NCBI GenBank assembly: GCA_965202585.1
Contig: OZ241832.1
Location: 57,226,001-57,290,000, forward strand
Length of the DNA stretch: 64,000 nucleotides
Source of the DNA: Thalia democratica
Taxonomy: Eukaryota
Direction of reading: 5' to 3'
In this document: one piece after another, positions 18,528 through 39,526 of the stretch
Numbering within the stretch: position 1 is the stretch's first letter
How the letters are laid out: the number at the start of each line of letters is the position of its first letter
Program-made: the position numbers and the translations under genes
The notes under the pieces: model-generated
What the model saw: only the letters and a program-made list of their open reading frames with translations
Told to the model about the DNA's origin: nothing
The model's database searches: none

Positions 18528-21500
18528 CTAAAACAGAACGATAAAAATGAGTAAAAGAAGCAAAACTGTTGAGTTTGAGCTTTGAATAAAACAACCGCTG
18601 TATGGCGCCATTGTGGAACTTTTTTCTTGTGTCATTGGTGATTTTGTAGTTGTCGGTAATGTTGTTGATTTTGTAGTTGTCGGTGATGTTGTATATTTTG
18701 TAGTTGTTGGTAATGTTGTAGATTTTGTAGTTGTTGGTAAAGTTGTAGAATTTGTAGTTGTTAGTAATGTTGTAAATTTTGCAGTTGTTGGTAATGTTGT
18801 TGATTTTGTAGTTGTTGGTAATGTTGTAGATTTTGTAGTTGTTGGTAATATTGTAGATTTTGTAGTTGTTAGTAATGTTGTAGATTTTGTAGTTGTTGGT
18901 AATGTTGTAGATTTTGTAGTTGTTGGTAATGTTGTAGATTTTGTAGTTGTTAGTAATGTTGTAGATTTTGTAGTTGTCGGTAATGTTGTAGATTTTGTAG
19001 TTGTCGGTAATGTTGTTGATTTTGTAGTTGTTGGTAATTTTGTAGATTTTGTAGTTGTCAGAAATGTTGTTGATTTTGTAGTTGTTGGTAATGTTGTTGA
19101 TTTTGTAGTTGTCGGTAATGTTGTAGATTTTGTAGTTGTTGGTAAAGTTGTAGTTTTTTAGTTGACGTTATTGTTGTAGATTTTTTTAGTTGTCGGTAAT
19201 GTTGTATATTTTTATAGTTTTTGATAATGTTGTAGATTTTGTATTTGTTGGTTATGTTGTAGGTTTTGCAGTTGTTGGTAATGTTGTAGATTTTGTAGTT
19301 GTTTGTAATGTCGTAGGTTTTGTAGTTGTCTGTAATGTTGTTGATTTTGTAGTTGTCGATAATGTCGTAGATATTGTAGTTGTTGGTAATGTTGTAGTTT
19401 TTGTAGTTGTTAGTAATGTTATAAATTTTGTAGTTGTCGGTAATGTTGTTGATTTTGTAGTTGTTGGTAATGTTGAAGTTTTTGTAGTTGTCGGTAATGT
19501 TGTTGATTTTGTAGTTGTTGGTAATTTTGTAGATTTTGTAGTTGTTTTTAATGTTGTAGATTTTTATAATTGTTAGTCATGTTGTTGATTTTGTAGTTGT
19601 TAGTAATGTTGTAGATTTTGTAGTTGTTGGTAATGCTGTAGGTTTTGTAGTTGTTGGTAATGTTGTAGATTTTGTAGTTATTGGTAATGTTGTAGATTTT
19701 GTAATTCTTGGTAATGTTGTAGATTTTGTAGTTGTTGGTAATGATAAAGGTTTTGTAGTTGTCAGTAATGTTGTAGATTTTGTAGTTGTCGGTAATGTTG
19801 TATATTTTGTAGTTGTTGGTAATTTTGTAGATTTTGTAGTTGACGGAAATGTTGTTAATTTTGTATTTGTTGGTAATTTTGTAGAATTTTTAGTTGTCGG
19901 AAATGTAGTAGATTTTGTAGTTGTTAGAATGTTGAAGCTTTTGTAGTTGTTGATAATTTTGTAGATTTTGTAGTTGTTGGTATTGTTGTAGATTTTGTAG
20001 TTGTCGGTAATATTATTGATTTTGTAGTTGTCGGTAATGTTGTTAATTTTGTAGTTGTTGGTAATGTTGTATATTATGTAGTTGTTGGTAATGTTGTTGA
20101 TTTTGTAGTTGTTGGTAATGTTGTAGATTTTGTAGTTGTTGGTAATGTTGTTGATTTTTTAGTTGTTCGTAATGTTGAAGATTTTGTAGTTGTTAGTAAT
20201 GTTGTTGATTTTGTAGTTGTCGGTGATGTTGTAGCTTTTGTAGTTGTTGGTAATGTTGTAGATTTTGTAGTTGTTGGTAATATTGTAGATTTTGTAGCTG
20301 TTGGTATTGTTGTAGATTTTGTAGTTGTCGGTAATGTTGTAGATTTTGTAGTTGTCGGTAACATTGTAGGTTTTGTAGTTGTTGGTAATGTTGTAGATTT
20401 TGTAGTTGTTGGTAATGTTGTTGATTTTGTAGTTGTCGGTGATGTTGTAGCTTTTGTAGTTGTTGGTAATGTTGTAGGTTTTGTAGTTGTTGGTAATATT
20501 GTAGATTTTGTAGTTGCTGGTATATTGTAGAGTTTGTAGTTGTCGGTAATGTTGTAGATTTTGTAGTTGTAGGTAATGTTGTTGATTTTGTAGTTGTCGG
20601 TAATATTGTAGATTTTGTAGTTGTTAGTAATGTTGTAGATTTTGTAGTTGTTGGTAATGTTGTAGATTTTGTAGTTGTTGGTAATGTTGTAGATTTTGTA
20701 GTTGTTGGTAATGTTGTATATTTTGTAGTTGTTGGTAATGTTGTTGATTTTGTAGTTGTCGGTAATATAGTAGATTTTGTAGTTATTCGTAATATTGTAG
20801 AATTTGTAGTTGTTGGCAATGTTTTAGATTTTGTAGTTGTCGGTAATATAGTAGATTTTGTAGTTGTTGGTAATGTTGTAGATTTTGTAGTTGTCGGTAA
20901 CGTTGTAGGTTTTGTAGTTGTTGGTAATGTTGTAGAATTTGTAGTTGTTGGCAATGTTTTAGATTTTGTAGTTGTCGGTAATGTTGTAGATTTTGTAGTT
21001 GTAGGTAATATTGTAGATTTTGCAGTTGTTGGTAATATTGTTGATTTTGTATTTGTTGGTAATGTTGTAGATTTTGTAGTTGTGGGTAATGTTGTAGATT
21101 TTGTAGTTGTCGGTAATGTTGTAGATTTTGTAGTTGTCGGTAATGTTGTATATTTTGTAGTTGTCGGTAATTTTGTAGATTTTGTAGTTGTCAGAAATGT
21201 TGTAAATTTTGTATTTGTTGGTAATTTTGTAGATTTTTTAGTTGTCGGAATTGTTGTAGATTTTGTATTTATTGGTAATTTTGTAGATTTTGTAGTTGTC
21301 GAAAATGTAGTATATTTTGTAGTTGTCAGAATGTTGTAGCTTTTGTAGTTGTTGATAATTTGTAGATTTTGTAGTTTTTGGTATTGTTGTAGATTTTGTA
21401 GTTGTCGGTAATATTGTTGATTTTGTAGTCGTCGGTAATGTTGTTAATTTTGTAGTTGTTGGTAATGTTGTATATATGTAGTTGTTGGTGATGTTGTTGT

Positions 21501-24500
21501 TTTTCTAGTTGTTGGTAATGTTGTAGATTTTGTAGTTGTTGGAAACGTTGTTGATTTTTTAGTTGTTGGTAATGTTGTAGATTTTGTAGTTGTTAGTAAT
21601 GTTGTTGATTTTGTAGTTTTCGGTGATGTTGTAGCTTTTGTAGTTGTTGGTAATGTTGTATGTTTTGTAGTTGTTGGTAATATTGTAGATTTTGTAGTTG
21701 TTGGTATTGTTGTAGGTTTTGTAGTTGTTGGTAATGTTGTAGTTTTTGTAGTTGTCGGTAATGTTGTAGATTTTGTAGTTGTTGGTAATGTTGTAGATTT
21801 TGTAGTTGTTAGTAATGTTGTTGATTTTGTAGTTTTCGGTGATGTTGTAGCTTTTGTAGTTGTTGGTAATGTTGTATGTTTTGTAGTTGTTGGTAATATT
21901 GTAGATTTTGTAGTTGTTGGTATTGTTGTAGGTTTTGTAGTTGTTAGTAATCTTGTAGATTTTGCAGTTGTTGGTAATGTTGTTGATTTTGTAGTTTTTG
22001 GTAATGTTGTAGATTTTGTAGTTGTTAGTTATCTTGTAGATTTTGTAGTTGTTGGTAATGTTGTTGATTTTGTAATTGTTGGTAATGTTGTTGATTTTAT
22101 AGTTGTCGTTAATGTTGTAGATTTTGTAGTTGTCGGTGATGTTGTAGTTTTTGTAGTTGTTGGTAATGTTGTATATTTTGTAGTTGTTGGTAATGTTGTT
22201 GATTTTGAAGTTGTCGGTGATGTTGTAGTTTTTGTAGTTGTTGGTAATGTTGTATATTTTGTAGTTGTTGGTAATGTTGTTGATTTTGAAGTTGTCGGTA
22301 ATGTAATTGATTTTGTATTTTTTGGTAATGTTGTTGATTTTGTATTTGTTGGTAATGCTGTAGATTTTGTAGTTGTTAGTAATCTTGTAGATTTTGTAGT
22401 TGTTGGTAATGTTGTTGATTTTGTATTTGTTGGTAATGTTGTAGATTTTGTAGTTGTTGGTAATGTTGTAGATTTTGTAGTTGTTGGTAATGTTGTAGAT
22501 TTTGTAGTTGTTGGTAATATTGTAGATTTTGTAGTTGTCGGTAATGTTGTTGATTTTGTAGTTGTCGGTAATGTAATTGATTTTGTAGTTGTCGGTAATG
22601 TAATTGATTTTGTAGTTTTTGGTAATGTTGTTGATTTTGTATTTGTTGGTAATGCTGTAGATTTTGTAGTTGTTAGTAATCTTGTAGATTTTGTAGTTGT
22701 TGGTAATGTTGTTGATTTTGTATTTGTTGGTAATGTTGTAGATTTTGTAGTTGTTGGTAATGTTGTTGATTTTGTAGTTGTCGGTAATGTTGTAGATTTT
22801 GTAGTTGTTGGTAATGTTGTAGATTTTGTAGTTGTTGGTAATGTTGTAGATTTTGTAGTTGTTGGTAATGTTGTAGATTTTGTAGTTGTTGGTAATCTTG
22901 TAGATTTTGTAGTTGTTGGTAATGTTGTTGATTTTGTATTTGTTGGTAATGCTGTAGATTTTGTAGTTGTTAGTAATCTTGTAGATTTTGTAGTTGTTGG
23001 TAATGTTGTAGATTTTGTAGTTGTCGGTGATCTTGTAGATTTTTTAGTTGTTGGTAATGTTGTTGATTTTGTATTTGTTGGTAATGTTGTAGATTTTGTA
23101 GTTGTTGGTAATGTTGTAGATTTTGTAGTTGTTGGTAATCTTGTAGATTTTGTAGTTGTTGGTAATGTTGTTGATTTTGTATTTGTTGGTAATGCTGTAG
23201 ATTTTGTAGTTGTTGGTAATGTTGTAGATTTTGTAGTTGTTGGTAATGTTGTAGATTTTGTAGTTGTTGGTAATGTTGTTAATTTTGTAGTTGTTAGTAA
23301 TGTTGTAGATTTTTTAGTTGTTGGTAATGTTGTATATTTTGTAGTTGTTGGTAATTTTGTTGATTTTGTAGTTGTCGGTAATGTTGTTGATTTTGTAGTT
23401 GTTAGTAATCTTGTAGATTTTGTAGTTGTTGGTAATGTTGTAGATTTTGCAGTTGTTGGTAATGTTGTTGATTTTGTATTTGTTGGTAATGTTGTAGATT
23501 TTGTAGTTGTTGGTAATGTTGTAGATTTTGTAGTTGTTGGTAATGTTGTTGATTTTGTAGTTGTTGGTAATGTTGTTGATTTTGTATTTGTTGGTAATGT
23601 TGTAGATTTTGTAGTTGTTGGTAATGTTGTAGATTTTGTAGTTGTTGGTAATGTTGTTGATTTTGTAGTTGTTGGTAATGTTGTTGATTTTGTAGTTGTT
23701 GGTAATGTTGTATATTTTGTTGTTGTTGGTAATGTTGTATATTTTGTAGTTGTTGGTAATATTGTAGATTTTGTAGTTGTCGGTAATGTAATTGATTTTG
23801 TAGTTTTTGGTAATGTTGTTGATTTTGTATTTGTTGGTAATGCTGTAGATTTTGTAGTTGTTAGTAATCTTGTAGATTTTGTAGTTGTTGGTAATGTTGT
23901 TGATTTTGTATTTGTTGGTAATGTTGTAGATTTTGTAGTTGTTGGTAATGTTGTAGATTTTGTAGTTGTTGGTAATCTTGTAGATTTTGTAGTTGTTGGT
24001 AATGTTGTTGATTTTGTATTTGTTGGTAATGCTGTAGATTTTGTAGTTGTTAGTAATCTTGTAGATTTTGTAGTTGTTGGTAATGTTGTAGATTTTGTAG
24101 TTGTTGGTAATGTTGTAGATTTTGTAGTTGTTGGTAATGTTGTTAATTTTGTAGTTGTCGGTAACGTTGTATATTTTGTAGTTGTCGGTAATGTTGTAGA
24201 TTTCGTAGTTGTTTGTAATGTTGAAGATTTTGTAGTTCTTGGTAATGTAATTGATTTTGTAGTTTTTGGTAATGTTGTTGATTTTGTATTTGTTGGTAAT
24301 GCTGTAGATTTTGTAGTTGTTAGTAATCTTGTAGATTTTGTAGTTGTTGGTAATGTTGTTGATTTTGTATTTGTTGGTAATGTTGTAGATTTTGTAGTTG
24401 TTGGTAATGTTGTAGATTTTGTAGTTGTTGGTAATCTTGTAGATTTTGTAGTTGTTGGTAATGTTGTTGATTTTGTATTTGTTGGTAATGCTGTAGATTT

Positions 24501-25463
24501 TGTAGTTGTTAGTAATCTTGTAGATTTTGTAGTTGTTGGTAATGTTGTAGATTTTGTAGTTGTTGGTAATGTTGTAGATTTTGTAGTTGTTGGTAATGTT
24601 GTTAATTTTGTAGTTGTCGGTAACGTTGTATATTTTGTAGTTGTTGGTAATGTTGTATATTTTGTAGTTGTCGGTAATGTTGTAGATTTCGTAGTTGTTT
24701 GTAATGTTGAAGATTTTGTAGTTGTTGGTAATGTTGTAGATTTTGTATTTGTTGGTAATGTTGTTGATTTTGTAGTTGTTAGTAATGCTGTAGATTTTGT
24801 AGTTGTCGGTAACGTTGTATATTTTGTAGTTGTCGGTAATGTTGTAGATTTCGTAGTTGTTTGTAATGTTGAAGATTTTGTAGTTGTTGGTAATGTTGTA
24901 GATTTTGTATTTGTTGGTAATGTTGTTGATTTTGTAGTTGTTAGTAATGCTGTAGATTTTGTAGTTGTTGGTAATGTTGTTAATTTTGTAGTTGTCGGTA
25001 ACGTTGTATATTTTGTAGTTGTTGGTAATGTTGTAGATTTTGTAGTTGTTGGTAATGTTGTAGATTTTGTAGTTGTTAGTAATGTTGAAGATTTTGTAGT
25101 TGTCGGTAACGTTGTATATTTTGTAGTTTTTGGTAATGTTGTAGATTTTGTAGTTGTTGGTAATGTTGAAGATTTTGTAGTTGTTAGTAATGTTGTAGAT
25201 TTTGTAGTTGTCGGTAACGTTGTATATTTTGTAGTTGTCGGTAATGTTGTAGATTTTGTAGTTGTTGGTAATGTTGTATATTTTGTAGTTGTTGGTAATG
25301 TTGTTGATTTTGTAGTTGTTGGTAATGTTGTTGATTTTTTAGTTGTTGGTATTGTTGTATATTTTGTAGTTGTTGGTAATGTTGTTGATTTTGTAGTTGT
25401 TAGTAATGTTGTAGATTTTGTAGTTGTCGGTAATAATGTTTTGTATTTTTCATTTGTTGGTGG
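18528..25463 (-). CDS. Thr-rich mucin-like stalk (9-aa repeat LPTTTKSTT) ending in a GPI-anchor signal; frame interrupted by TAA at 22029-22031 and several 1-nt indels between ~19150 and 21480
   Basis: Open minus frame from 25463 to 22029 (1144 codons). The repeat ends in frame with KSPMTQEKSSTMAPYSGCFIQSSNSTVLLLLLIFIVLF* (TAG 18528-18530), which has small residues, a spacer and a hydrophobic tail. Confidence 0.75.
18642..25432. repeat. 27-bp tandem array, ~250 copies, consensus GTTGTTGGTAATGTTGTAGATTTTGTA
   Basis: Directly visible. Exact 27-bp register from 21481 to ~25430 (lines 540 bp apart start in the same phase); higher-order blocks, e.g. 459 bp (23782 vs 24241). Confidence 0.98.
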
Positions 25464-26132
25464 CTGTGTTCGTAAAGGGTATAAAACATTATTGTTTTAA
25501 TGCTGGAATACTTTAATAAAATACCTTATTACTAAGTAATTAGTCTTTTTTACGGTTGCCACTTTAAAAGAAAAAAATTTTGAATTATAGTTTAAGTTTA
25601 TTGAAAATTAAACTAGTTAAAAACTTTCTGTTAATCAAGCTTACATACATAACTAAAATATCATTATTATAAAAAAGCACAATATTTAAGTAGACAAAAA
25701 AATACAATTAGTAAACTTCATTGCAGTCATAAAAACTATTTTGAAAATTTGAAGATTTCATCAAAGTTTTTGAAGTAAAAGTTTCAGATACGCCTGAGTT
25801 TTATAACAAGATCTTAAACAGCTTTAACCTAGTCTGAATAAAAAAAAAATTACTAGCCTGTTTGTTCGGTAACCCTGTTTAAAATAAAGTTCATACCGAA
25901 GTTTATAAACAGTGAATTAATTATATAACTAAACAAATTACTATAAATCAGCTTAAATTAACATTAAGTTTTTAAACATTTAAAGAAATGTATATAAATT
26001 TACTAAGCTATTAATGAATTAGAAAAACCTATTTTTATTGAGCATTATAGTAATTCTCTCTCGGCAATAAAATTATTGCATTCAAAAAGAGCAAATGTGA
26101 ATAGTAAGAGGATCTATAAGAACTATAATACG

Positions 26133-27111
26133 TTAGTTTGGAACATTGCATAAATTTTCTTGGCAACATTTGGTAGTAATGGGTATACTCCTAGAAAAAT
26201 AATAAAAAATATTATTACCATATAGAAAATTGTTTTCAAACTATTTTTGTTATTACTTATAATACTATCAACAACATATTCAAAGTGTAAACCTAATACG
26301 TTTAATAGTACATACTACTTTCAAAGTTAAAATAATGTAGCTTTTATAATTTATTTCGTAACAATTATTAGTAAGTATAAATCATGGTTAGGACAGAAAT
26401 ATTTCTTTTGCTGATTACTTTTGTAATGAACAGTTTTAATGCAGTTTACTTTTATTTATATTATTATTCCTTAACTCTTGATGGTATGTTTTATCATTTA
26501 AAAAACTGATATGTACTATACATTCAATTAATTTCTAGTATAAATATTCCGTTTTTATGTTAAATTTATTGTTTTGTTAAAATAAAAATAACTTACCCTT
26601 CTGTGATACCAGACGTTTGAACACTGTGATCGAACTGAAACAACAAAAAAGCAATTTTGCTTGCATTCAAGCTACAATAAGCTTGAGAGGTGCACATGCC
26701 TAATTTTTTTATTTGATCTAAAAAATTTAAAAAAAATTGTTAAAATTAAGTTATTCATACTATCAAACATAAGGTTTTCTCAAACTAGATTAAAACTTAT
26801 CAAAACAAATAAGCTGTTGTTATTTTTTTGTTTTAAATTTAGAACATTGTATTAAGAAAAGATGTTTAGTTGTAACAGCAGTTTTATCGTGTACATTTTA
26901 CTTGTAAAATTAACTGTTTATTGAAACTAACACTCTACTCCTCTGGACTTAAATGATCCTGAAGTTTTGACACAGTAACGTTTGTTGTCTGGACAGTCAC
27001 GCCGTCTTCCTCCACCTTGCGGTAATATACAGTCTCTGTGTAACACTCTAATGCTTTTGCATTGCTGACAAATGCAATAATTGCATAAAAACTACGTAAA
27101 ACCACTTTCAT
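26133..27111 (-). CDS. Secreted Ly6/uPAR (three-finger) domain gene, apparently frameshifted in exon 1. Exons ~27111-26932, 26699-26597, 26190-26133
   Basis: Signal peptide MKVVLRSFYAIIAFVSNAKA then LECY; a shifted frame gives DC...DCPDNKRYCVKT; exon 2 MCTSQAYC; exon 3 TTKCCQENLCN (canonical CC-x4-CN end). Confidence 0.65.
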
Positions 27112-30530: not shown

Positions 30531-31767
30531 ATGCTCAATTTACTGGGATGTAAAGAGCTTATTTAAATAGATTTATGCAAATTACATACTTTATTCTCGA
30601 CCGGTTTCGAATTGAACCGGTTGACGAAACCGGTCACAAATAGAATATATAATCTTCATAAACCTATTTAAACCTAGCTTACAAATCAACTGAGCATCCA
30701 ATAATTTTAGAATCTAAAGCCCCAAGCACATTAACAATAGACCGACCAAAAAATCAAAAAGTACTTAAGATCTATAAGGGGAAGGTGTTGCTTACAAATC
30801 AAACTACTAATAAACTAGATACCACAGCCTAAATTAATGGTTAAAGAGATGAAAAAAACTAATTACTTAAACTATTTTACATATTTTTTTAACTTTAATC
30901 GAAAATGTTCAAGTTTTTTGCAAAAACACTAGTTATTTAGAAGTTCGTTCCACATTTTTACCGAACGAAGGAAAAAATGTTTTTTTTTGTGTACTAAGCA
31001 GCTACAACAACACAGGTTCTAGAATTACCAACTTAAACATTCAAACTTATTTATAAAAAATATACTAATTTTAGTTGATTATTCTTATAATTTAAATCTA
31101 ACTTTTCTTATTCTTTCCATCAAACATATGTTTTAAATATTTTCATTAGGTTGATAACAACTCAAGATGTAGCTATAACTTAATGATTAAACATTAGTAT
31201 TATGTAATATTATCAAGGAAAATTTTTTAAATATTAGAACTCTGACTGAAAATAGTAATAAATTTACATTTTTTCTTTTATTCTACTATCATTACAAATT
31301 AATCAAAAGCCCAGAAAATTGTTTGTAACATGTTAGAATTTTTTCTTCAAAATTTGTATTTTGTTCTTAAGACAAGCTAAAAGCTTTAATAAGCAATACT
31401 AAAAAGATGATTTTTAATACTAAACAAAAACATAATACTCTATTCTATTAGAGTTAAGATATCAACACTAATTACATTAGTTTTTCTGATAAAAAGAGGT
31501 AATTTAATAGCAAACCAATCAAGTTTTAATTAACTAAAGTATATTTTATGATCAGAAACGAAACGAGTACAAAATAAAAGTTCTGTGTGGAAATCTTACC
31601 AATAAAAGTGAAAAATTAAAAAAAAAAACTAATTGTACATAAGTTTTCCTCAAGATAAAAGAACATATAACGATAATAACAAACATATTTATTTAAAATG
31701 TAACGAATTTTTTTTACTTAAATTGAAAAAAAAATAAGTTAATCTTTTGTTGAGCACGAAACAGCAT

Positions 31768-31773
31768 TTTATT
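31768..31773 (-). terminator. AATAAA polyadenylation signal of SELENOF
   Basis: Minus-strand AATAAA ~55 nt downstream of the SECIS. Confidence 0.55.
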
Positions 31774-31811
31774 GCAACCAAAACAAAAACTTGCCAGGAA
31801 AAACTTTCTAT

Positions 31812-31890
31812 TTTGCATTTAATTAAAACATCCAACGCCAGGCACCTACGTAAGGTTTAGCCTGACGTCATCATACGCTAAAGACAAACA
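31812..31890 (-). ncRNA. SECIS element (form II) in SELENOF 3' UTR; core 31830-31874
   Basis: Minus strand AUGA-U-GACGUCAGGC-U-AAA-CC-UUACGUA-GG-U-GCCUGGCGUU-G-GA-U. It has a 10-bp helix II, 12 nt from AUGA to AAA, an apical ministem, and helix I UUUGUCUUUAG/UUAAAUGCAAA (10 of 11 pairs). Confidence 0.92.
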
Positions 31891-32296
31891 AGTATGTATA
31901 TATATACTACGAAAGTTTTGTGACGTCACAATCAAGATAGAAGGTCTTCACCCCCGAGAAGACACATCTAATATTGTAACGACTTTCCTGGTAATCTTAT
32001 CAGTGGCGAACAAATAGGCCGTTTGTGTTCAAGTAAATAATATTTTAAATAATAGACGGAAATACACAATAAATATGATGTAAAATAACAAATTGCAGAT
32101 ACTTTTTGATATAAAAAAATTGTAAAAGCTTTTTGTTATAAAAACCTTACCTTTAAAAACATTAAAAAAAAATTTACTATTATTAGTCTTGAAACAAAAA
32201 ACTCTCTAAGTTATAAAGTAGAATGAAGAAACAAGTTTATGTTTGAAATATAGTATTTTGAGAATTGATAAGTTATAAGTAATAATAAATAGATGA

Positions 32297-35200
32297 TTAC
32301 AAAAGTTTTTCTCTGAAGAACTCCTCAATGTTATCAGTGTCCCACTTTTCAACTGATAAAGTTTCCTGAACTGATTTGTTTTCATCCAGCAATTTCACAG
32401 TGGGATCCATACCACGTTTGTACTGATAAATAATTAGTTGAGATAAAGAAATTGTTGAAATATCTAATTTTAGATTTTCATTACAGATAATAAAACTTGA
32501 AAAGATGATATAAGGATATTTAACTATTAAAGAAAAAGCTTTAAAAGGTGGATTTCAGAGAGTGTGATTTTCTAACTTTGAGAAAATGAACGCTGATCAA
32601 AAATATTTGGTAAACCATCAGTAGAATGTTTTTATGTTTTAATCAGAAAGTCAGCTTATTTAGAGGAAATTTAATTTTTATTTCAAGATTAAGACACTTT
32701 TTTTCACTAAATTTAAAAAAATGGTAAAAAGATTTGTTTTCATTAACACAGAACTAAAGTTGTTTGTTAAACCGTTTATTATATAAGCCAGACAAGGTTT
32801 TGTTTTTGAATAATTTGTTTTTTATCAGTTATTAGTTTTAAAATGTTTATCAACAGATATTAGTTATTATATATAAATAAGTTTAGTTACAAGAAAAATC
32901 ATAGTGTTATGTCCTTATTTAAGCAAACTCTCAATAAATAGTTAAAACAAAAATCTAAAAACTATCACAAAATTAAGTAAAAAACTTTTTTTTTGGAAAC
33001 TTAGACTTTTTTATTCAAATAAGCTTATATATTGGTTATTATATGTATCATTATTTTTCAAAATTTCAACTAGTATTTTAAAAGTTTTTGAAAGAAGTTA
33101 AAAGCATACGATGTTTATACAAACAAATAAATAAAATAACTTACTTGAATTTTTAAGTTTGAGAAAGCTTTTGCTTTATCACTCTTAATGAAAGCTGAAA
33201 AAAAAAACTGAATTAGTTCAAATAAAAACACTTGTTTTAAATTGAAGTTTTATAAACAAATATTTAAAAAAGCTTCCGAGCTTCGAATTTGTTCATATGA
33301 AAAATATTAGTCAACTTTAAGTAGTAGATAAATTTAATCTACATTTTAAATTCTATTGAGTCTTAAAGCTTCTAATTTACTACAATGAAATTTTTGAATA
33401 ATTCAAAAACTTTGTATTACTATTTTATTCTAGTAATTATATAAAAAACAACCTTGGACTTGGGGGTAACGTCCTAATTTTCATTGACACACTTCTAAAA
33501 TCGCTCCGAAAAATTTCTACATAAAATTAAATAACCGTCACCAAAAAACACCAAAACTAACCAGTTATACTAACTAAAAGTAAATAAAATATTTTAAAAA
33601 CTTAAAAAGTTTTAAAAAGATGAAAGCATTGTTTTACAAAAAGAAAAAAAAAGTTTTATTTAACTTGACATAAATTATACTTCTAACATTTAAAGTTACT
33701 CAATACTTAAAAGTAACAATTTTTAAAATTAACAATTTAAAAGTCTATTCAAAATTGCTTCAATATCTTTTAAAAATAATGCTTTTAAATATTCAAAATT
33801 AGTCTAAAATAGATTTATTAATCAGTATCAAAACTAAGTTCATCATACTAGTTATAAACTAATTTATTTACATAAGAGTTTTTTCAGGCTAAACCTAGTT
33901 TGTGTGTAAAAGTTTTTTATTAAAATATAAATTAATATTTAATTACTTTTAGTTATGAAATGACGATGGAAGTTTTAAAAACTTTTAACATTTTACTTAA
34001 AACCAATTTTCAAACAAATGTAACTATAACTATAATTTACCCATCATATTATAAACAACGATTTAAAAGTTAATTTCTTAACTACTGTATTAAAGTTATT
34101 TTGCTAAATTTAGACCAATTACTTTTAGCTTTAAAAAATTGAATTTTAAAAGTGTTAAACTTCTTAATCATATTTTACAAGCTTAAAGTTTTTAAATTAT
34201 GCATATAACATTCAAGTAGCAGTAAAACAAACTATTAATATGAAAAACTTGTTAGCTGAAATAAAACATAAGTTTTCAAACAACTACCTACGCGTAATTT
34301 TATTACCCAAGTTAAAATCAAAACAGCATGTGCTTACAAATGTTTTTTTTTCTATTTAATTTAAGTTGTTTTTATTATAAGAAAAGAAAAACTATCACTT
34401 CTAAAGTAGAAACAACAAGAAATATGAGCAGTGCACCTTAAACACAACTACTGGAGCTCATAGAAAAAGCGAATATGCAGTTACCCTGTTTGTTCAGTAT
34501 TATCAAACACAAATAAATACCACATTTAGAATTTTGCTATGCTACTAATAAAACCCAAATAAATACCATTTTGATATTTGTGCTACTAATAAACAAATAA
34601 ATACCATAGTGATATTTATTTTACTAATATATAGACAAAATAAATACCACACTGATATTTATGCAACTAATAAACCCAACTAAATACCACACTGATATTT
34701 ATGCAACTAATAAACCCAACTAAATACCACACTGATATTTATGCTGCTAATACAACCCAAATAAATACCACACTGATATTTATGCTGCTAATACAACCCA
34801 AATAAATACCACACTGATATTTATGCTACTAATATAACAGAAGCAAATACCACACTGATATTTATGCTACTAATATAACAGAAGCAAATACCACACTGAT
34901 ATTTATGCTACTAAAAAATTAACCAAAATAAATACCACACTAATATACAACCTGCAACTTGGGGGTATTTACGAAACTGTCAGTCGCACATTTCTAATAT
35001 TCCGTATGGATACTGAACATATTTGTTATTAATTTATTCAATACTTGTTACAATTAGTCTTCAAATTTATCATAACCACTACATTGTAAACATTAACTTA
35101 AAAACAAAAAAAGTTTAAGATTTTGAGTAAATTCTGAATAAGTTTGATGCATCAAAGCTAAAGGGGTGTAACATTTTATTTTTTAAGTATAAAAATTAGC

Positions 35201-36861
35201 CCTTACAAGAAAGTTGTATGTTCTATTTTTTCCTACTTCTTAAAATAATATTAAAACAAATTTAATATACTTGCTCAAAATCAATTATTAATTTATACAA
35301 TATTAGAGTTTAAACTTTTAGCCTCAGGAAAACTTAATCTTGAAAACATTAATATGACGAAAATTATTATAAATACCTTTAATTTGTATATCTGTCCTCC
35401 TAATAGTAAGAAAAAACGAGTTTTAAAAATAATTTTAAAGTGTATTTAAAAAAAAACTATTTAACAACTATTTCAATATCAAAAAAACAACCTTTTACAA
35501 TACTTCACACCAGATTTAAAAACCAGAATGATATGACTATAAAATTTACTTTAAGGAATACAAATATTGTGTTTACAAAAATTTATAAACTTTTTGACAA
35601 CAATTTTCCATAATAAGCCATTATAAATCACTGAAGTCAAACAAAAATCAACAAACTTTGACGCCGGAGTCGTCTTCATCTTTCTCGCAGCACTCATCAC
35701 ACGAATCTTGCATCTCTGTCAGGTCGAACTGTTTCAGTTTGGTGCACGATGAGCACACCAAACCATCAGTGAACCCCAGCTTGCTGCACTCATCAGGTGA
35801 TAATTTGCCGTGGCAACTTGATACCTGGTAAGTTGTTTGTTTAAACAAATTAAAAATTCTCATATTTAACTTATAACAGTCATGAGTAGTAATATTTGGC
35901 TGAACGCCTGGGCAGTTATGGCAACTATTCTGTTAAGTGAACCTTATTATGCCATATTTTACATGTATTCTCAAAGGAGGCTTGATAATGTTAAAAATGT
36001 TTGATTATAAAATTTGGCCATGTGTATCTTATCATTCACAAACACCCTAACTTTTTTTGTCTGCTTGGTTTTTATAGTATGAAAATTTTAGTTGTGAATG
36101 GTTTGTTGCAAATAACATTTCATTTAAAATAGCAGAAACATTGTGATACTAAACTTTTTTCTTATCGATCAAATTTGAAAATTGTCATAGATTTTTATCA
36201 CATTTAGCAAGTTTGATCATTTTGTTTTTCAATGATGGTCTGTTGTCAAAAGAAAAAGTTCAAACAGAAATTATCAAAAAGATTTATGGCATATACTTTA
36301 GTATAAGCGATAAAAAAGCCTATGTTATAACAAAATCTATGTTATAACAAAATGCTTTAAATATAAGCTATTTTTAATATAAACGGAAAAAATGCTACTT
36401 CAATTTATTCACAAAGTACTCTGCTTTTTTAGTAACACAACTCCTTAACACAATTGAAGTAAAATGTCACACTTATTAGGAATGTAAATAATATTATTTT
36501 AGAATATTACTTTCATAAAATATTACTAAATAAATAAAAATTAAACTTGAATAAAATTTAAAACATTAAACAATGGATAGTATAAGTAATGCTAGCTTTT
36601 AAATAAATGTTATAAATTACAAACCATCAATAGAAGTTAAGTTAAAAATTCTAAAATAAACAATATTCTTTAACAAGATTGTAAAAAAAGTGTCAAACTT
36701 AATCATTATTTTACAATTTAAAACAAGATTTAAACAATTTTGAATGTATTTAGAACAATTATAATAAATAAACAACTAACCGATATCGAAAGCAGGTACA
36801 CAATAGACAGGATTGAAACTTGGAACAAGTTCGACCTGTCTGATTTCAAACGACTTCTCAT
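32297..36861 (-). CDS. SELENOF: Selenoprotein F (Sep15). Exons 36861-36781, 35824-35657, [35012-34952 OR 33516-33453], 33194-33145, 32422-32297
   Basis: Signal peptide MRSRLKSDRSNLFQVSILSIVYLLSISVSSCHG; Cys-rich domain ECSKLGF...CSSC...CDECC; AILEVCQ(TGA)KLGRYPQVQAFIKSDK; YKRGMDPTVKLLDE...EKWDTDNIEEFFREKLL*; downstream SECIS. Confidence 0.97.
33453..33516 (-). CDS. SELENOF: SELENOF Sec exon B (64 nt): KFFGAILEVCQ-U-KLGRYPQVQ, TGA at 33481-33483
   Basis: TAG|AAA...CAAG|GTTGTT; phase 0 in, phase 1 out, matching the flanking exons. Confidence 0.95.
34505..34942. repeat. Intronic minisatellite, ~11 copies of a ~39-42-bp unit (AAATACCACACTGATATTTATGCTACTAAT...)
   Basis: Directly visible, starting immediately after the donor of Sec exon A. 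Confidence 0.9.
34952..35012 (-). CDS. SELENOF: SELENOF alternative Sec exon A (61 nt): YPYGILEMCD-U-QFRKYPQVA, TGA at 34980-34982
   Basis: CAG|TAT...GCAG|GTTGTA; same phases as exon B; aligns to it without gaps with Cys and TGA in register. Confidence 0.85.
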
Positions 36862-37294
36862 GGAAAGTTGTTTTATTTAAACTGAAAATAAAACAGTAAA
36901 TTTCATTGAAACTAGTAATAAGTTAGCTAAATGTCTAAACTACATGTACACATTTAAAATTGACTAAAAACATAAACTAAATAAATACAAACTTATTAAC
37001 TAAACTAAGCTCTTGAAGAGTCTACCATATAGTCAGCTTTTAATTCTAGTACAATTAGATTGATATAATACTATTTTAAATAAAAATATATGATAATGAA
37101 ATAAGCAAAATTGTATTTTATGTAAACAGTTCAAATATTTTAGTTAAATAAATTTAAATAGAATTTAACAGATTTTAGTTTAATTAACTTATATAACTTT
37201 AATAAAGTTATTGTAAACAAAAAATCAATATTTGTAGCTTTTAAACAGCCATCAAGTCATTCTTCCAACAATCCACACCAAACCGACAACATCC

Positions 37295-37702
37295 CTAATA
37301 CTGAGACGAAATGAACTTGATCCACCTGTACACGTGGCACCACTTGTTGTGCTTGTCACTCCCAGCCACGTGCTTGAAATAATCCTCAACTAACACAAAC
37401 ACGATCAAATCGGCCACCGTCTTCTCTTGTCCAACCAGGTAGGTCCTGCTTGCAAGGTGCCTGTTGAGCTTATGTAGCACATCGCTTTCATCCTGGCACT
37501 CGTGGCACCACAGCGTTACGTCTTCCATCCACTGGTGCACAAGGCACTTGCTGATGCTGTCTGAAGCGTCGAGGTTGGGAAAGTGTTCGAGGAAGCGGAG
37601 GAGTGAGTAGGAGTAGCAGTCTCCGTCTTTGACAAACTTGCTTGAAGGCAGACCTACTAATGATCCGAGTTTCTCCAAGTTGTTCGATGTGCTTCTGTTC
37701 AT
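37295..37702 (-). CDS. EEF1E1: GST-C-like protein of the multi-synthetase complex (EEF1E1/AIMP3-like), single visible coding exon; C-terminus possibly spliced
   Basis: LVHQWME...LNRHLASRTYLVG...TVADLIVF...HVYRWIKFI is the AIMP3/EPRS-type GST-like helical domain. Symbol tentative. Confidence 0.7.
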   Translation of the reverse strand: MNRSTSNNLEKLGSLVGLPSSKFVKDGDCYSYSLLRFLEHFPNLDASDSISKCLVHQWMEDVTLWCHECQDESDVLHKLNRHLASRTYLVGQEKTVADLIVFVLVEDYFKHVAGSDKHNKWCHVYRWIKFISSQY

Positions 37703-38404: not shown

Positions 38405-39526
38405 CTACAATAGGTTATTGCTTATTGAACTCATGCAGTTCTTATTTCCTCCGCAACACCCATTTGTTTTCTTTCCGCCACCGTTGCAACCATTGGTCTG
38501 CTCATCCTTAATGTTCAACCTGCTGGTCTTGTTGTTCAACTCTGTCTCACTCTCATTCAGGAACTCCTTGTTGATCTTGCTGGTCTTCCCAACACACAAC
38601 TTCGCCTTACCCTTGTTCAAACCTTCCAGCAGGATGCAAGCCTTGCATACAGAATTTGATGAAATGTAATCACATCTGACGCACCTCATAAGCTTTGGCA
38701 TCTTCACTGTCTTCTTGATGACCATGGACTCCCCAGAGTGGATAATGTCCAAAATAGCCCTGGGCCTGATGGCTTCCAGGTCCTTGATGTAGACCCTGGC
38801 ATTGCCCCTGTATGCCTCTGGAGAGTATATGCACTCGGTGGAGAAATACACCAGCTTCTTGTGGTAGGCGTAGGCAACAATTTCCTTCTCATAGGCGTAC
38901 TTCAGGGGCTTCACCCTGGGTATTCCAGTTGGATCATCCCCGGTGATGATGGAGGTGCACCTCTGCAGCCTAGCAACGTCCCCCCTCATAATGTTCATGA
39001 TGACCGTCTCCGCAATGTCGTCAGCGTTGTGACCAGTGACTACTTTGTCCGCCTTGATCATCTTGGCGCCCCTGTCCAGGGCTTGACGGCGGAAGACCCC
39101 ACAGAAGGTGCAGTTGTTCTTCTTGCCTATTTGCTTGACTATCTCGTCCATGGTCCACCCGTACAGGTCTTTGTAGGAGAGAATCTCTAATGGTAAGCCA
39201 TAATCTACTTTGTTTTGCTTGACAGTTTCCAGTGAATCGTCCCTGTAACCAGTGATTCCTTCATCTATTGACAATAACCTCAAATCAAGCCCATAATCAT
39301 ACTGTCTGTTCAGAGTGTCCATTACGTGGGCAAGTACCGTAGAGTCCTTGCCTCCGGATACTCCAATTGCAACAACTTCTCCCCTTTTGAAAAGGTTGTA
39401 CCTGGTTATGGTCTTGTGTATTTCAGTTTCAAAGAGGACAAAGAAGCATTCCTTGCAAACCGGATCGCCGTTTCTTGGGCGCTTCAGTGAAGCTTTAGCT
39501 GTTTTGCATTTAACACAAAGTGGCAT
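38405..39526 (-). CDS. CTU1: Cytoplasmic tRNA 2-thiolation protein 1 (Ncs6/Ctu1), intronless CDS, 373 aa
   Basis: PP-loop SGGKDS, CxxC pairs (CVKC, CKEC, CTFC, CVRC, CKAC), [57 protein letters not shown]. Confidence 0.98.

Follow-up and report, generated by a model that had tools for sequence, protein, structure and literature searches.

Can the selenocysteine (Sec) active site of a selenoprotein be exchanged by alternative splicing? The question is raised by a 64,000-nt stretch of the genome of Thalia democratica (NCBI GenBank assembly GCA_965202585.1, contig OZ241832.1, positions 57,226,001 to 57,290,000 of the forward strand), which is referred to here as the window and is numbered from its first letter. 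The window contains one complete SELENOF (15-kDa selenoprotein, Sep15) gene on the minus strand, read from 36900 to 31500. Its first exon codes for a signal-peptide-like N-terminus and its second is Cys-rich; two homologous Sec cassettes and two C-terminal exons follow, with one selenocysteine insertion sequence (SECIS) element for the whole gene. The best explanation of the evidence, given a probability of about 0.7, is an expressed and conserved pair of alternative Sec exons, one gene giving two isoforms, with translation of the upstream cassette and a redox effect predicted. The wider reading is offered tentatively, at a little short of even odds: an ancient mutually exclusive Sec exon pair, maybe tunicate-wide, giving two selenoenzymes chosen by tissue or life stage, and the first Sec active site exchanged by splicing.

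Two homologous selenocysteine cassettes

Cassette A (35012-34952, minus strand, 61 nt) encoded YPYGILEMCD-Sec(TGA)-QFRKYPQVA, and cassette B (33516-33453, minus strand, 64 nt), the canonical one, encoded KFFGAILEVCQ-Sec(TGA)-KLGRYPQVQ. Both contained Cys-X-Sec by an in-frame TGA, with X being Asp in A (CDU) and Gln in B (CQU). The cassettes were located between exon 2 (35824-35657, minus strand, 168 nt, ending in phase 0) and exon 4 (33194-33145, minus strand, 50 nt, phase 1 to 0, (A)FIKSDKAKAFSNLKIQ). Each ran from phase 0 to phase 1 with AG and GT at its flanks, and all introns of the gene were GT-AG. Splicing of the exons in silico with A alone or B alone gave an open SELENOF frame ending in ...EEFFREKLL, and inclusion of both or of neither gave a frameshift with early stops; A and B are thus mutually exclusive in any productive mRNA.

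The two cassettes differed in length by one codon at the 5' end, after which Cys-X-TGA and YPQV remained in register with no internal indel. Identity was 36/61 nt and 9/20 residues, and the cassettes were 1435 nt apart. By calculation, with uniform base composition assumed, a match to E-[LIMVF]-C-x-TGA-x4-[YF]PQV is expected ~3e-11 times per base by chance, so that a second copy within a 2.4-kb intron is not due to chance. The exons had a G+C content of 39-49%, save exon 4 (26%) and exon 5 (36%), and the three introns around the cassettes 20-23%. An earlier reading of this DNA by a model that saw the sequence alone, the original prediction, had given the exon coordinates, peptides, AG/GT ends and phases of both cassettes, and every detail matched on re-reading. 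Its further claims that either cassette alone is in frame while both together frameshift, and that Cys-X-TGA and YPQV are kept in register without an indel, agreed with the in-silico splicing and the alignment.

Cassette use in RNA

Assembled contigs of sequencing runs, not reads, served as the source of RNA and were placed on 31780-36900. A run query with an intron-rich stretch returned DNA runs only, while a query with the 3' exon returned X8 (a run of the same organism as the window, designated organism A), marine metatranscriptomes and a DNA run of a related organism, designated organism B. Transcripts of organism A occurred in the marine metatranscriptomes. The library type of X8 is unrecorded; the run was treated as RNA because exons were covered and introns essentially were not. 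All depths given are word depths in X8.

Exon 4 was joined in the X8 contigs to exon 5 and to each of the cassettes. The joint of exon 5 with exon 4 (32422->33145) had a depth of 107.3, that of B with exon 4 (33194->33453) a depth of 92.1, and that of A with exon 4, B being skipped (33194->34952), a depth of 59.5. The B joint was also present in metatranscriptomes X3 and X4. One X8 contig had a loose end, TTTGACGCC, at 33516. It is identical to the last nine bases of exon 2, and was therefore read as exon 2 joined directly to B with A skipped. Mapping of the cassette junctions had been proposed with the original prediction; of these, the contigs contained 34952->33194, 33453->33194 and exon 2 joined to 33516. 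By the A-exon 4 and exon 2-B joints, each cassette occurred without the other; an A-B joint was absent among the best-supported joints listed for X8. When the depths of the two cassette-exon 4 joints are added up, A contributes about 40%, and judged by these joint depths the two cassettes are therefore used at comparable levels.

Two sequence versions of the gene were present in X8. The exon 2 variants (35657-35780) had 12 differences in 124 nt, and the 3' untranslated region (UTR) variants (31944-32303) had 33 differences plus gaps. The minor version of exon 2 and the 3' UTR contained variants common to organism B and a marine metatranscriptome. It therefore seems that the sample contained either haplotypes that diverge strongly or two cryptic species.

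Remaining exons and the SECIS element

SELENOF was single copy across the 802-Mb assembly. Exon 1 (36861-36781, minus strand, 81 nt) began with an ATG, encoded a hydrophobic, signal-peptide-like N-terminus (MRSRLKSDRSNLFQVSILSIVYLLSIS) and ended in phase 0. Its joint with exon 2 was found in the RNA of X8 at 35822->36779 (equal to 35824/36781 with the cut displaced by +2) with a depth of 74.6. Exon 2 encoded the Cys-rich domain, which is the UGGT-binding domain in characterised SELENOF; it was present in a single genomic copy and was spanned by X8 contigs over 35657-35780. The coding part of the last exon, exon 5 (32422-32297, minus strand), encoded YKRGMDPTVKLLDENKSVQETLSVEKWDTDNIEEFFREKLL followed by TAA, and the 3' UTR continued to at least 31824; X8 contigs spanned 31824-32422.

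The SECIS element was located in the 3' UTR at 31884-31820 (minus strand), about 415 nt 3' of the stop codon. It matched Rfam RF00031 with 37.9 bits against a gathering score of 35, and the fold of its stem-loop had z = -2.4. No second SECIS was found in 31000-37200, even at a permissive E<=1, as expected from the original prediction that one SECIS serves both cassettes.

Protein family and structure

Exon 2 was aligned with 15 other SELENOF N-termini (alignment A1), in which C13, C27, C42 and C45 were invariant and C24 and C46 nearly so. The signal-peptide-like exon 1 and the Cys-rich exon 2 are the features that separate SELENOF from SELENOM; both were present, and UGGT binding is predicted. 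The metatranscriptome protein P0186, full length and nearly identical to the B isoform of the window, matched PDB 2A4H (Drosophila Sep15 domain) over residues 76-160 with E = 2.8e-25. The domain PF08806 (Sep15_SelM) was precomputed for relatives. An AlphaFold model based on 35 homologues (mean predicted local distance difference test score 83) placed strand beta-1 at residues 87-92, followed by C93-x-U95 and a first helix from about residue 97. As modelled, the swapped exon (residues 84-104) is exactly the active-site module.

The same exon pair in other organisms

Public metagenome contigs were scanned with the degenerate pattern given above, and about 70 real SELENOF exons were returned. A 64-nt exon with the same boundaries and a phase-1 end was widespread among animal genomic contigs. 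In addition, a SELENOF N-terminus profile built from alignment A1 was searched against 1.8 billion proteins and gave 763 relatives.

Two ascidian-like metagenome contigs of one organism, L004/L054, contained a complete SELENOF gene with intron positions identical to those of the window gene and one SECIS. An A-type exon of 61 nt (YHSAILQVCK-TGA-TLLHFPQIE; CKU) with AG/GT flanks was located 1.4 kb upstream of a 64-nt canonical exon (RFPSAVLEVCG-TGA-KIGRYPQVQ; CGU), which was itself flanked by AG/GT. Exon 2 of L004 was closest to the SELENOF of Ciona savignyi, with the next clade holding organisms A and C.

The latter, organism C, was recognized in one metatranscriptome sample by two proteins, P0019 and P0044, with identical first 74 residues and different continuations. 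Its contigs L105 and L106 were identical except for a 197-nt insert in L105. This insert comprised a 61-nt exon (WPHAILEICY-TGA-ALPRYPSLK; CYU) spliced to exon 2 and then a retained 136-nt GT..AG intron, after which came the canonical exon (CGU). The SECIS of L106 scored 34.3 bits, just below the gathering score.

In three organisms, then, a 61-nt non-canonical Sec exon was located upstream of a 64-nt canonical one, the short exon lacking the first codon and starting with an aromatic residue. Such a layout, derived and common to all three, is better explained by a single old duplication than by three separate events. With A-type peptides of this shortness and divergence, a tree could not decide between a single and a repeated duplication.

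No second cassette was found in the gutless-worm-type, vertebrate-type and other genomic contigs with enough upstream sequence, and pairing of all retrieved proteins by identical N-termini gave no alternative pair besides P0019/P0044. A degenerate DNA pattern specific for A (E-x-C-D-TGA...YPQV) had no match in the metagenome contigs, a word-indexed protein search with exon 2 gave no match, and exact look-up of the SELENOF proteins of Ciona savignyi and Catharus ustulatus matched no contig. The cassette pair is probably a tunicate feature. In the worm-type contigs L022, L066 and L073, a candidate second cassette 3' of the canonical exon had TAG in place of TGA and the wrong spacing, and was rejected as a chance match.

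Selection and active-site chemistry

Comparison of A with B over 19 codons, which have low statistical power, gave synonymous differences at 8 of ~11 sites (pS 0.71) and non-synonymous differences at 17 of ~46 (pN 0.37). Saturated synonymous sites together with moderate non-synonymous change suggest an old duplicate kept under purifying constraint. These values and the 61/64-nt pairs of the two other organisms bear out the selection on both cassettes that was proposed in the original prediction.

The A-type exons retained the hydrophobic residues of the beta-strand, the Cys, the Sec and the aromatic-Pro pair. Missing from them, counted from Sec, were the +1 Lys/Arg and the +3 Gly, both of which were conserved among canonical exons save for the Cys-containing insect forms. 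The residue X of the CxU motif was Gly in most eukaryotes; Ser, Gln, Lys, Asn and Arg were also seen in canonical exons (loci L003-L104, proteins P0001-P0150), with P0061 as an example of CKU and with CQU, CSU or CGU in close relatives of organism A. The original prediction had described SELENOF as a single-active-site protein with CGU in vertebrates: Gly is indeed usual, yet X is not strictly Gly outside vertebrates.

The tandem array next to cassette A

Tandem Repeats Finder identified a 41-nt unit in 10.7 tandem copies at 34505-34946; the array starts 6 nt past the donor of cassette A and occurred at this locus only in the 802-Mb genome. Organism B had an array shorter by ~244 nt, or roughly six units (joint 34550->34795, run X9), and organism C had no such array in its 136-nt A-B intron. 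It is possibly a splicing-regulatory element or a plain minisatellite. It may influence the use of A, but does not belong to the conserved features of the exon pair.

Alternative explanations

Several observations weigh against the interpretation of A and B as a working pair, and are best judged along with the explanations that they would favour. All of the RNA evidence for the A-exon 4 joint is in the assembled contigs of the one run, X8, and the exon 2-A joint of organism A was not among the joints listed for that run. Docking/selector pairings, a search for which had been suggested with the original prediction, were not found in the introns, where the inverted repeats were only AT-rich low-complexity matches. 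Cassette A could be a decaying or non-coding duplicate, included through noisy splicing or in a regulated, unproductive event that reduces SELENOF output, with protein made from B only. Such decay would fit organism C, whose only A-containing contig kept the A-B intron and is non-productive, and whose A exon has PS in place of PQ, without the otherwise invariant Gln of YPQ; the A exon may be decaying in this lineage. It would also fit the A-type exons' departure from the conserved residues at +1 and +3, and the record of B forms in metatranscriptomes X3 and X4, which showed the B joint only, and in protein clusters, where 10/10 members of the lineage of organism A had the B form and none the A form. 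On the other hand, A alone is in frame, so it is no poison exon by itself, and its share of the summed joint depth in X8 is about 40%. The frame, Cys, TGA, splice sites and 61-nt length were moreover kept in three lineages despite saturated synonymous sites, when AT-rich neutral sequence would have about 9% stop codons (calculated). Decay of A was accordingly judged unlikely.

Cassette use might instead be specific to an allele or lineage, with one haplotype (or a co-sampled cryptic species) using A and the other B. The two versions of exon 2 and the 3' UTR in X8 invite this explanation, since the depths of the exon 2 variants (88 and 47) resemble those of the B joint (92) and the A joint (60), and the minor version matched organism B. 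It is nonetheless quite improbable: the assembled reference haplotype has both cassettes intact with good splice sites, contigs of metatranscriptome X4 with variants of the minor type use B, and the B contig begins no further than 9 nt into exon 2; by de Bruijn graph reasoning, this fits both exon 2 variants running into B. Very improbable indeed is an A-exon 4 joint that arose as an artefact of short-contig assembly, with A never spliced. A single contig has the joint, with 28-31 nt on the exon 4 side, but its position coincides to the nucleotide with the predicted GT and AG sites, the intronic background of 0-5 is far below its depth of about 60, the intron directly upstream of A had no coverage, and an independent assembly from organism C has exon 2 spliced to its own A exon.

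Proposed mechanism

The preferred explanation remains a pair of alternative Sec exons in use in one gene. The exon for beta-1, the Cys-X-Sec motif and the start of alpha-1 would have been duplicated in tandem, B being the canonical copy and A an old, diverged upstream copy. The spliceosome would join exon 2 to A or B and then to exon 4. The mRNAs with both cassettes or with neither would be frameshifted with early stops and presumably removed by nonsense-mediated decay. The two productive mRNAs would share the signal peptide, the Cys-rich domain, the C-terminal thioredoxin-like part and the one SECIS of the 3' UTR, which would recode whichever UGA is included. The predicted result is two oxidoreductase isoforms of the endoplasmic reticulum (ER), CDU-QFRK and CQU-KLGR, the former depending on translation of A, with surroundings of the active site that differ at the otherwise conserved +1 Lys/Arg and +3 Gly. 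As the dipeptide does in CxxC oxidoreductases, these surroundings may by analogy adjust the redox potential or the way substrates are handled. We infer both a regulated choice of cassette and a different redox behaviour of the isoforms.

The A-B intron measured 1435 nt here and 136 nt in organism C, and steric hindrance is therefore unlikely to enforce the exclusion. The default mechanism would be a regulated choice between two acceptors, with frame incompatibility removing the double and null products.

Neighbouring genes and other observations

An upstream neighbour of SELENOF on the same strand was CTU1 (38405-39526, minus strand), intronless and 373 amino acids in length, whose best full-length named matches were from Phallusia, Styela, Clavelina and Ciona. 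These matches put the genome within the tunicates, and the SELENOF gene is taken to be that of a pelagic one. An arthropod origin had been suggested by named protein hits; it was rejected in view of CTU1 and of the similarity to Ciona. An Atlas search recovered the protein family but gave no taxonomic indication of use. An intronless open reading frame (ORF) of 135 amino acids (37295-37702, minus strand) ended about 430 nt before exon 1 of SELENOF. Some metatranscriptome contigs with SELENOF relatives (P0181 and P0182) were about 650 nt longer than the mRNA, at up to 1.8 kb. An operon-like transcription unit including SELENOF, as known in tunicates, is possible. Elsewhere in the window, base composition was strongly skewed over 18528-27111, in AT as well as in GC (the latter up to 0.9), and the stretch had repeat ORFs rich in Thr.

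Trp was given at the Sec position in P0019, P0044, P0154-P0157, P0186 and other proteins from AT-rich marine transcripts. The gene caller had apparently used a code with TGA as Trp, and by accident gave full-length selenoprotein ORFs that are easily mined. The bird protein P0092 (UniRef A0A8C3TZR9, Catharus ustulatus) had, after exon 2, ISVFLEVCCQ, 10 residues to the stop, instead of LYAGAILEVCG; judged from the sequence, this model could be an annotation artefact or a lead to a vertebrate alternative cassette.

Significance and comparison with known systems

As the redox partner of UGGT, a sensor of protein folding, SELENOF has a biochemical role that is still ill defined, and one invariable active site has been assumed for its CxU motif. 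Two natural active-site cassettes on an otherwise identical protein would provide a ready-made comparison of redox potential and substrate range. If the interpretation is true, the gene offers a natural experiment in ER glycoprotein quality control, one that bears on the tuning of redox function by the residues next to Sec. The known routes of selenoprotein diversification, gene duplication and Sec/Cys exchange, would then be joined by another, in which the Sec site is swapped at the level of the exon and one SECIS is shared. Annotation pipelines that accept one Sec exon per gene would miss such isoforms.

The exon architecture resembles that of FGFR2 IIIb/IIIc and Dscam, which have tandem-duplicated mutually exclusive exons. 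In these systems, as here, adjacent homologous exons of near-equal length and the same phase swap a functional core, and double inclusion or skipping breaks the frame. The difference is that the swapped exon of SELENOF has a recoded UGA and a Sec active site, for which no such case was found in the literature searched. SELENOM and fish Fep15 are alike in that the thioredoxin-like fold of the Sep15/SelM family was diversified with different active-site motifs. There the route was gene duplication to separate loci, whereas in the window it was exon duplication and splicing at one locus.

Full-text searches of the literature turned up no SELENOF gene described as having alternative Sec exons. For Ciona, the selenoproteome paper has Sel15 as a single gene and does not mention an alternative exon. 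Mammalian SELENOF has an isoform, well supported by expressed sequence tags, in which skipping of exon 4 gives a frameshift to a premature stop (Mariotti et al. 2012, PMC3316567); this is alternative splicing in the same family, but the exon is skipped and the active site is not exchanged. Human DIO2 splice forms are described in PMC2874816 as using different TGA codons. Compared by that description, splicing likewise changes the UGA that is decoded as Sec, and the difference is that DIO2 has no homologous cassette pair for the same structural element.

The closest known system is the SPS-ae gene of ascidians (Mariotti et al. 2015, PMC4561486). Depending on which of its alternative 5' exons is used, the isoform has Sec or Gly, and there is one SECIS; the authors of that study read it as two functions encoded by one gene. 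The remark in the original prediction that no selenoprotein was known to switch its Sec-bearing exon therefore stands for SELENOF in the literature searched, but not in general, an alternative Sec-bearing exon being already known in ascidian SPS (PMC4561486). Both are tunicate selenoprotein genes in which alternative exons swap the segment with the Sec codon and the SECIS-bearing 3' end is shared. The alternatives of SPS are 5' exons with Sec versus Gly, whose homology to each other is not stated in the text of PMC4561486 as read here, whereas those of SELENOF are homologous internal cassettes, both with Cys-X-Sec. SPS-ae switches between Sec and non-Sec forms, and the SELENOF pair would switch between two selenoenzymes. 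The new element is the homology of the two alternative cassettes together with the retention of Cys-X-Sec in each.

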